NCBI RefSeq assembly: GCF_001194135.2
Contig: NC_069002.1
Span: forward strand, 17,773,692 to 17,808,361
Length of the DNA: 34,670 bases
Reading direction: 5' to 3'
Source: Octopus bimaculoides
Lineage: Eukaryota
Shown: positions 27,346 to 28,539 of the stretch, piece after piece
Numbering within the stretch: the stretch's first letter is position 1
Layout of the letters: each line of letters starts with the position of its first letter
The notes under the pieces: generated by a model
What the model saw: only the letters and a program-made list of their open reading frames with translations
Told to the model about the DNA's origin: nothing
Database searches by the model: none
Made by a program: the position numbers and the translations under genes

Positions 27346-28539
27346 ATGCAAGTTTATAAAAGATCTACCGTAACGACTGGCGGTGTGGTTGGCCGTGATG
27401 GGAGTGGAGTCGGTGCACCGACAGTTCATTCCTCGCCATCGGGAACTAACACACCTGCTGGTGGTGGTGGTGTTCCCAATGTTTTAGTGAATGGCCCAGC
27501 GGTCGCCCAGCCGCCACCATCACCTCAACAACAACAACAGCAGCAAGTGCAACCACAACAACAAATGGCACCCACTCAACAATCGCAACCCCCACAATCA
27601 CAACAAACACAACACATTTTGCAGTCCCCAGGGGTTCTGTCAAATTCGCCAATTATTCGGAGACGTTTTCAAAGAACCTTAAACCATTATGTGGAACCTG
27701 TTGAGCACGTTCACCATGTCGAACAATATGACCCCGAGAAAGATAAATGGGTGAAACTGGTTGAAAAGATGAACCTTCAGGTGGTGCCTTATACATACTT
27801 CGCTTCATGTATGAGTAGAAACGATTATATGTATTTGGTACTGCGGGCCACCAAATGGCGCCCAATTAAAGCCGGTTTCCGTGTCCACAGTTTGTTACCG
27901 CTCACAAATGAGATGCACATGACTGGTCCATCAGAGCCCTATGTCGTTACCTACATCGATCGTGACGCTAAACTTTTTGCCGATGGCGACTATAAATTCG
28001 ACTTTCCAAACGATTATTTTCTAAACAATATTTGTTTAACCCCAGAACAAACCAGGCTACCATACATGAGTTGCAGCCGAGTGTTCGATATTGGATATGC
28101 TATATCGCACCAATGGAGCTCCAATACTGACTACAAAAGTGAAAGTACGCAGAACATCTTTAATACATCAGCTTGGAGTACTTTATTGCCAGGTCAGGAA
28201 TACCGTTACGAATGGCAATATAATGGTAATCTTTGGTTTTCTAATTCTAGTTTTCAACACTTGAACCGACAAAATCTTCAAGACACCTTTATGCGGGAAT
28301 ACCACCACTTTAACCAACAGCAACTTCCGATACAAACGCAAAACCAATTTGCCGAAAGTATCCAAGACCCACCCCCAGTGGCAATTCTTAGCATGCCAGC
28401 CATCCGTCATCCAAATAGCACTATCATGAAGTTCTGTATGAACTTATGGATAGATTACTGGATGGAAATCGAATATTCAGATACATTTGGAGATGTACAG
28501 ATGATACCGAATCTTTTGGCTGCAGATCCAAGGTGGTAA
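27346..28539 (+). CDS. Intact 397-aa ORF encoding a parvovirus-like capsid (VP, jelly-roll) protein; endogenous viral element, possibly domesticated
   Basis: Uninterrupted ORF, noticeably more GC- and CpG-rich than its flanks. [32 protein letters not shown] (27799-27897) aligns without gaps to AAV [34 protein letters not shown] (AAV quoted from memory). [11 protein letters not shown]...PNST...KF...MEIEY (28366-28476) parallels AAV HPPPQILIK...NPST...KF...[16 protein letters not shown] recalls the hamaparvovirus 'LRPGKN...W' segment. The N-terminus is Gly-rich. Confidence 0.82.

Follow-up and report, generated by a model that had tools for sequence, protein, structure and literature searches.

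The window analysed here is a 34,670-nucleotide stretch of the genome of Octopus bimaculoides (RefSeq assembly GCF_001194135.2, contig NC_069002.1, positions 17,773,692 to 17,808,361, forward strand), which resembles scaffolded animal DNA in its G+C content of ~35 %, its microsatellites and its several N-runs. Within it lies a single-exon open reading frame (ORF) of 397 codons plus stop (27346..28539, + strand), which a first-pass annotation, made from the sequence alone, had singled out as an intact parvovirus-like capsid gene embedded in host DNA. That the frame is intact is borne out: it holds no stops or frameshifts, an in-frame TGA stands five codons 5' of its ATG, which is the first ATG thereafter, and 397 open codons would arise by chance at the composition of the window with a probability of ~1e-10 to 1e-12; the runner-up among N-free ORFs of the window is 190 aa. 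Taken together, the evidence set out below indicates that a gene for a parvoviral capsid protein (VP) has very probably been taken over by the host for its own purpose.

The encoded protein falls into two parts (Table 1). Its low-complexity tail occupies the position held in viral relatives by the phospholipase A2 (PLA2) domain unique to VP1, a domain found in most, not all, parvovirus subfamilies, and varies in length among cephalopod orthologues (proteins of 365-428 aa). The core that follows, estimated earlier at ~295 aa, measures 299 aa, which is the size of the smallest known parvoviral capsids and near that of the Penaeus stylirostris densovirus (PstDV) chain (target length 299). Each of the segments to which the first-pass annotation had pointed falls on an element of a structural model made with AlphaFold2 (AF2): the betaB-like segment on aa 103-116, FASCMS...AGFRV on aa 152-187, PPPVAILS on aa 345-350 and MEIEY on aa 363-379. 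Among these, the block at aa 152-187 is the best conserved against both viral VPs and solved capsids.

Table 1. Features of the window, in order of position; strand is given as + or -, or as. where none applies
Feature	Position	Strand	Remarks
Long terminal repeat (LTR)-retroelement integrase fragment (Integrase_H2C2)	172..597	-	141-aa piece left
Degraded long interspersed nuclear element (LINE)	17033..19901	+	Endonuclease/reverse transcriptase (RT) on four separate short ORFs, at least 3 frame interruptions
Upstream non-coding block, unique in the window	26067..26168	.	80 % identical to positions 100-201 of the Argonauta hians locus (L011), collinear
Complete single-exon coding sequence (CDS), very probably a parvoviral VP-derived host gene	27346..28539	+	0 stops, 0 frameshifts, likewise in 7 other taxa
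N-terminal low-complexity tail, aa 1-98	27346..27639	+	Gly-rich, then poly-Q/P-rich
Jelly-roll capsid core, aa 99-397 (299 aa)	27640..28536	+	AF2-modelled, aligned to viral VPs
First long predicted strand, aa 103-116, betaB position	27652..27693	+	Contains the 12-residue segment singled out earlier
Kelch-motif-like hairpin, aa 119-144	27700..27777	+	Single copy, sub-threshold in Pfam
Helix and long strand, aa 152-187 (FASCMS...HSLLPLT), alphaA/betaD position	27799..27906	+	Alignments, AF2
Q-rich variable loop, aa 319-338	28300..28359	+	13/20 positions vary, low model confidence (pLDDT)
Strand after PPP motif, aa 345-350 (VAILSM), betaH position	28378..28395	+	Alignments, AF2
Last long strand, aa 363-379 (includes YWMEIEY), betaI position	28432..28482	+	Alignments, AF2
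N-run inside a (TA)n microsatellite	28621..28737	.	82 bp past the stop codon, outside the ORF
Downstream non-coding block, unique	29806..29920	.	84 % identical to A. hians L011 14504-14617, collinear

Parvoviral ancestry of the capsid core

Close homologues of the ORF were found in cephalopod-type data only, comprising the A. hians protein GAB1607623.1 (97 % identical), and a cluster of 365-376-aa proteins from Logan/ENA assemblies. A profile built from these cephalopod proteins alone (A1), searched against 1.84 billion representative proteins, retrieved 13 distant relatives of 138-596 aa with E-values from 5.7e-17 (P0003) to 7.5e-4, to which a further profile search added P0017, a second PLA2-bearing VP1. 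Ten of the relatives were scanned against Pfam: PLA2 (PF08398) lay above threshold in three, and four gave sub-threshold matches to IHHNV_capsid, the best at 22.6 bits against a cut-off of 25. The PLA2 domain is carried by P0003, P0004, P0012, P0015 and P0017, and the genes of P0015 and P0017 adjoin Parvo_NS1 on contigs of 4.2 kb, marking these as parvovirus-type genomes. A translated search (tblastn) of the window with the PLA2-bearing P0003 covered 27661-28506 (E 8e-20), and alignment with hhalign of seven cephalopod against 13 virus-type sequences returned a probability of 99.9 % (E 2.6e-33) over 280 columns, pairing aa 99-380 of the ORF with the viral region that follows the PLA2 domain. 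A mixed profile reached solved capsids as well, led by 9nek, the virus-like particle (VLP) of Syngnathus scovelli chapparvovirus (E 6e-14, in two stretches reaching both ends of the core), and followed by those of Penaeus monodon metallodensovirus (PmMDV; 6wh3, E 1.5e-10) and PstDV (3n7x, E 1.8e-9), then by bocavirus and other VP2/VP3 chains.

Fold comparison led to the same family. A first AF2 run, on three near-identical sequences, reached a predicted local distance difference test (pLDDT) score of 30 and its model was not used; the model of aa 99-397 built from 22 sequences had a mean pLDDT of 70.5 and a predicted template-modelling score (pTM) of 0.71. It contains every capsid secondary-structure element, and is predicted to be a jelly roll with a helix before the strand in the betaD position, as in solved parvoviral capsids. 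The check proposed in the first-pass annotation, a Foldseek search of such a model against Parvoviridae VP structures, returned only Parvoviridae capsids among the top 50 matches in the PDB and the top 50 in BFVD. Best in the PDB were 9nek (5.7e-11), 3n7x (3.8e-10) and the PmMDV structure 6wh7 (9.4e-9), with Bombyx, Zophobas and Acheta densoviruses, adeno-associated virus (AAV), canine parvovirus (CPV) and bocaviruses below them; AAV capsids rank among the significant matches. In BFVD the best were metagenomic Parvoviridae capsids (4.3e-14, template-modelling (TM) score up to 0.67). These results support homology of the ORF to VP proteins of Parvoviridae, including the VPs of NS1-encoding genomes, and the capsid likeness first read from a few motifs is now carried by the A1 profile (E 6e-17 when rounded), the hhalign alignment and the fold search alike.

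The fish and crustacean capsids (9nek, 3n7x, 6wh3/6wh7) are thus the best matches by Foldseek (E 6e-11 to 9e-9, TM ~0.5) and by profile, and resemble the octopus protein in a core of ~300 aa, in strands that follow one another in the same order, in a helix that precedes the betaD-position strand and in the lack of PLA2. They differ from it in that identity is 10-14 %, and in that the cephalopod protein is chromosomally encoded, has no NS1 partner and bears a poly-Q/P tail. By sequence the closest relatives lie elsewhere, among the PLA2-bearing VP1s of two ~4.2 kb contigs (L012 and L013) and a set of metagenomic or endogenous viral element (EVE) proteins (P0003-P0016), with 18-27 % identity and conserved blocks along the whole core; unlike the cephalopod gene, these have the VP1-unique PLA2 and longer loops (348-602 aa), two of them adjoin NS1, and they are not conserved host genes. 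The first-pass comparison with the small capsids of invertebrate hamaparvoviruses holds in part: the core is small and hamaparvovirus capsids are the top fold matches, but the nearest sequence relatives bear PLA2. Membership of Hamaparvovirinae is defined on NS1 phylogeny, and the capsid in that subfamily is without PLA2. With NS1 gone from the locus and PLA2 present in the nearest relatives, the source virus is not filed as a hamaparvovirus here; the likeness is a structural resemblance in the model, and the source virus need not have belonged to that subfamily.

Three observations on these relatives and on the core may be added. Firstly, on both L012 (206-4041) and L013 (126-4007), two independent contigs, VP1 with its PLA2 is encoded upstream of NS1, both genes being on one strand. 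Parvoviral genomes usually place NS to the left of VP or are ambisense, and the order on these contigs may be a real but unusual genome order or may reflect permuted assembly. Secondly, six VP-like ORFs of 179-580 aa (P0004 and P0024-P0028), at least 90 % mutually identical, lie on one ENA contig of 1,139,406 bp and resemble a multicopy set of endogenous parvoviral elements that bear PLA2 and are kin to the cephalopod gene. Thirdly, when the ORF is searched alone, its sole family signal is a 25-residue Kelch-motif-like stretch (15.5-16.1 bits against a Pfam cut-off of 20.1), matched also in designed Kelch proteins, one of which (P0007) was retrieved by profile A1 and set aside. Kelch-repeat proteins consist of five to seven tandem repeats that build a beta-propeller; the ORF has one motif only, below the Pfam threshold, and identity as a Kelch-repeat protein was rejected, the low E-values to designed proteins being inflated by the matching of one short stretch against six identical repeats. 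The hairpin is invariant in all cephalopod orthologues save aa 127 (Q or K), the same stretch being variable in viral relatives, and lies between the first two long strands, where it is judged to have arisen by chance or convergence.

Chromosomal setting, orthologues and constraint

The neighbours of the ORF in the window are transposon debris. The earlier statement that every other recognisable coding sequence is broken holds for the LTR-retroelement integrase fragment (172-597) and for the LINE, whose endonuclease and RT pieces are scattered over separate short ORFs (17033-18860). In A. hians, whose assembly is chromosome-level (PMC12682272), the gene lies inside a scaffold of 28.9 Mb as a full ORF with the same start and stop. 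Around the gene, two non-coding blocks of ~100 bp (26067-26168 and 29806-29920), unique in the window and in A. hians alike, keep the same order and orientation in both; they are candidate regulatory or untranslated-region (UTR) elements and serve as synteny markers. Beyond them, nearly all of the flanking sequence of the window is unalignable to A. hians. In a third taxon (L031) identity to the window is 94 % across both ORF borders into the flanks. In a second, deeper clade of carriers, the genomic contig L014 (148 kb) runs collinear with Logan contigs of a sister taxon (L001-L010), with flanks of 79-83 % identity over up to 3.7 kb and no intron-like gaps. No trace of NS1, PLA2 or a second VP copy was found at the three loci searched, namely the window, L011 and L014, and PLA2 (PF08398) was found neither in the ORF nor in any frame of the three. 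The element is therefore virus-derived sequence joined to host chromosomal DNA, that is, an endogenous parvoviral element (EPV), as the first-pass annotation had proposed on seeing it embedded among host repeats and as the transposon-rich flanks, the A. hians scaffold with its collinear blocks and the 148 kb contig establish; an orthologous copy stands at the same locus in other species.

The surroundings of the orthologue on L014 likewise include degraded transposons (2907-3458 and 5040-5573), an RT fragment with two and a mariner-type transposase fragment with five internal stops. The RT family concerned is present as thousands of fragments, 73-81 % identical, within the same ENA source.

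An intact VP ORF, with 0 stops and 0 frameshifts, is present in eight distinct taxa belonging to two deep clades: the window, L031 and A. hians make up the first, and the second holds three taxa that are 96-97 % mutually identical and two at ~80 %. The three close carriers, at 96-97 % identity, look like a species complex. All copies begin alike (MQVYKR), end alike (PRW) and have a Gly-rich/poly-Q tail, and all are without PLA2. Between the window and A. hians (27346-28539 against L011 9668-10954), the protein is 97 % identical and the DNA 81 %.

Selection on this gene was gauged from synonymous and non-synonymous changes over the 293-298-codon core (Table 2). The ratio of non-synonymous to synonymous divergence (dN/dS, or omega) is 0.004-0.02 in six of the seven unsaturated pairs, one of them with 0 non-synonymous changes; in the seventh and closest pair it is 0.06, a value derived from just 5 differences. 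Between the clades dN is ~0.098 and core identity 84 %. The tail evolves faster (omega ~0.1-0.25). Of the 299 core positions, 241 do not vary across the eight taxa, with 76 % invariance in predicted loops and 87 % in strands, and the only variability hot spot of the core is the Q-rich loop at aa 319-338.

Table 2. Synonymous (syn) and non-synonymous (non-syn) changes in the core for four pairs of orthologues
Pair	Syn	Non-syn	dS	Omega
Window vs L031	27	0	0.18	0
L001 vs L014	50	2	0.36	0.008
L001 vs L015	93	12	0.90	0.019
Window vs A. hians	150	12	Saturated (four-fold sites 66 % different)	Not computable

Because core omega is this low and the ORF is intact in eight taxa, long-term purifying selection, rather than recent integration, accounts for the state of the gene. 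The first-pass annotation had left these two as alternatives and had proposed orthologue searches and dN/dS as the means to separate them: intact orthologues were found in eight taxa, with omega far below 1, so that purifying selection (core omega 0.004-0.02) stands and recent integration falls. What had spoken for a recent event, or for a virus, exogenous or episomal, that had been assembled into the scaffold along with host DNA, was the sight of an intact ORF amid broken transposable elements, with an N-run 82 bp after its stop. Against it stand orthologues in other taxa with saturated synonymous divergence, unique collinear flank blocks common to the window and A. hians, the match of L031 to the window through both ORF borders at 94 %, the lack of NS1 at the loci searched, and the position of the A. 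hians copy within a 28.9 Mb scaffold; this explanation is refuted.

Whether the two clades inherited one gene is a separate question. An alternative given little probability is that the gene was endogenised two or more times, once in the Argonauta-type clade and once in the second, with the copies of the window and A. hians perhaps being old paralogues. No DNA similarity outside the CDS links the clades, and the window and A. hians are saturated at synonymous sites and differ strongly in G+C content at third codon positions (GC3), all of which would fit such a history. It is countered by the identical start and stop, a common point at which PLA2 was lost and the Gly-rich and poly-Q tail, features absent from viral relatives; by a core identity of 84 % between clades as against at most 27 % to any virus-type relative; and by the two unique flank blocks that are collinear between the window and A. 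hians. Because these host-type derived features are common to all copies and absent from viruses, a single origin of the gene across the clades is favoured on sequence grounds.

The minimum age that follows from a single origin depends on who carries the second clade. If its carriers are cuttlefish, the gene predates the octopodiform/decapodiform split; if they are benthic octopuses, it predates the split between Argonauta and Octopus. One second-clade contig (L010) comes from a run, SRR31864758, declared by its paper as larval RNA-seq of Sepia esculenta, and is 99.6-99.8 % identical to contigs whose runs were deposited by several further submitters, some of them European. There are two possibilities, that cuttlefish make up the second clade or that this run is mixed in label or content, and the choice decides the minimum age of the gene.

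A probable path from viral capsid gene to host gene

Taken as a whole, the best explanation, which we consider probable, is that the ORF is an endogenous parvoviral element turned host gene, kept under very strong purifying selection and working by self-association. Its parts carry different weights. That this is a domesticated parvoviral capsid gene can be held with high confidence; that the protein acts through self-association, a proposal drawn from the pattern of constraint and the modelled structure, is evenly balanced; that it builds a closed, capsid-like particle is doubtful; and closed T=1-type shells of ~20-25 nm in cephalopod cells, used for a conserved task such as the carriage of cargo between or within cells, are somewhat more doubtful again. 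In the course of events proposed, the VP gene of a small invertebrate parvovirus would have been fixed long ago in a cephalopod ancestor, without the PLA2-bearing N-terminus and without NS1. From then on it would have persisted as a protein-coding gene of one exon and one copy, with very strong purifying selection acting on it. The protein would self-associate along the former icosahedral contacts into oligomers, possibly as far as a closed shell of 60 subunits, and the new Gly/poly-Q/P tail at its N-terminus would provide host-specific interactions. Self-association is suggested because constraint spans loops and strands alike and all capsid secondary-structure elements are retained; constraint on loops as well as on strands would be expected of a protein that makes many contacts with other proteins at once.

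It is worth noting that several observations weigh against this account at one step or another. Searched alone, the ORF matches capsid families in neither Pfam nor PHROGs, nor any PDB capsid by sequence (in Pfam, no curated capsid family such as Parvo_coat or IHHNV_capsid is matched above its gathering score). The link by sequence depends on intermediates, because solved capsids come up with the cephalopod-only profile at no better than E 0.16-0.18, non-significant values at which 3n7x and 9nek nevertheless lead the full-domain matches, and the alignment behind the AF2 model itself included those viral relatives. At the level of the locus, the flanks lack host genes and the sequence has diverged too far for synteny to be compared between the two deep clades; formally, two integrations of very similar viruses are still compatible with the data. 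Core GC3 is 0.43 in the window and 0.64 in A. hians, with synonymous sites saturated, a contrast for which deep divergence, compositional drive in one lineage and old paralogy are all possible. Finally, transcription is documented in one RNA-seq run only, and the ends of carrier contigs fall in homopolymers or microsatellites, by which RNA and DNA sources are not separable. The full CDS of one taxon has been assembled independently in >160 runs, SRR31864758 among them, and wider transcription is likely.

Domestication need not have preserved a capsid-like way of working. A tentative alternative of appreciable weight is that the protein is now a beta-sandwich binding module, monomeric or in small oligomers, whose poly-Q/P tail has a role in the nucleus or in condensates. 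The replacement of the N-terminus by a Gly/poly-Q/P low-complexity tail of variable length is in keeping with this, as are the minimal core (299 aa) and the rise of a conserved Kelch-like hairpin where viruses vary. Uniform constraint over the whole core, loops included, nevertheless exceeds what a single binding surface would need, and all of the capsid secondary-structure elements are retained.

A further alternative, improbable in our view, casts the gene as an antiviral EVE, whose capsid protein interferes with exogenous cephalopod parvoviruses by co-assembly or by blocking a host factor, or whose locus is a source of small RNAs. Related genomes of exogenous parvovirus type are present in public data, and immunity derived from EVEs is commonly proposed, as for the EVEs of the virus of infectious hypodermal and haematopoietic necrosis (IHHNV) in crustaceans (PMC12287923). 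Yet an omega of ~0.01 and near-invariant loops over deep time are the opposite of what a diversifying restriction factor would show, and a small-RNA source needs no ORF, whereas here the protein is frozen while synonymous sites change freely. The pattern of substitution points to a conserved cellular role rather than to an antiviral arms race.

Set against known systems, domestication of a parvoviral capsid gene would be unusual. To our knowledge, endogenous parvoviral elements are common and nearly all are fragments, and the few cases of co-option derive from the replication gene. A co-opted Rep-derived EPV is known in enRep-Myo9 of guinea pigs (bioRxiv 10.1101/572735), and other EPVs include dependoparvovirus EVEs (PMC7474932) and the IHHNV-EVEs of crustaceans (PMC12287923). 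Like these, the cephalopod gene is a sequence of parvoviral descent that became fixed in the germ line of an animal, and some EPVs keep open frames under purifying selection; the co-opted EPVs found in the literature are, however, Rep/NS-derived or fragments, whereas here a complete capsid core persists with omega ~0.01 in two deep clades. A survey of parvovirus-related sequences names molluscs, yet neither a cephalopod nor a conserved capsid gene appears in it (PMC5013282), and no earlier description of a cephalopod EPV or parvoviral capsid gene was found in the searchable literature, itself an incomplete set.

Arc and PEG10, to which the first-pass annotation had likened the ORF, are domesticated retroelement capsid genes for which particle formation is established. 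The likeness is that a capsid gene, viral or from a retroelement, persists in the host as a conserved gene poor in introns; the difference is that the capsid domain (CA) of Arc/PEG10 Gag is alpha-helical, stems from LTR retroelements and is known to form particles, whereas the octopus protein is a predicted jelly roll, comes from a single-stranded DNA (ssDNA) virus and may or may not form particles. Were closed shells to form, this would be the first domesticated ssDNA-virus capsid, the jelly-roll counterpart of Arc and PEG10. Even short of that, a complete capsid core under constraint like that of the most constrained host proteins places the gene among the clearest candidates for a non-retroviral capsid that has been domesticated, and the recruitment of jelly-roll capsids for host functions, as has occurred with Gag capsids, becomes directly testable. 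For paleovirology, it sets a minimum age for a lineage of PLA2-bearing invertebrate parvoviruses not sampled otherwise, and preserves that lineage as if frozen; for cephalopod biology, it adds a lineage-restricted, strongly constrained gene.

Other features of the window

A near-perfect palindrome of 298 nt lies 1.35 kb upstream of the ORF (25695-25992), with GC-rich outer arms around opposed telomere-type arrays, (CCTAAC) in ~14 copies at 25765-25850 and (TTAGGG) in ~7 copies at 25873-25913. As single-stranded DNA it folds at -121 kcal/mol (z -22). It is single-copy, its arms are slightly diverged and the outer arms are unique in the window; those outer arms had no match in the other loci compared, the syntenic position in A. 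hians falling just outside the compared locus. A relic of a parvoviral terminal hairpin was considered, and with no counterpart found the palindrome is treated as an observation apart from the gene; its possible identities are a foldback or miniature inverted-repeat transposable element (MITE)-type element and an interstitial telomeric relic. Further upstream, the stretch at 24000-25600 shows a strong excess of C over G (GC skew -0.45 to -0.56), with trinucleotide arrays of TAC, CAC and TAT and a 99-bp tandem repeat at 25347-25540, and yields long spurious ORFs of poly-Thr/Val/Ile.

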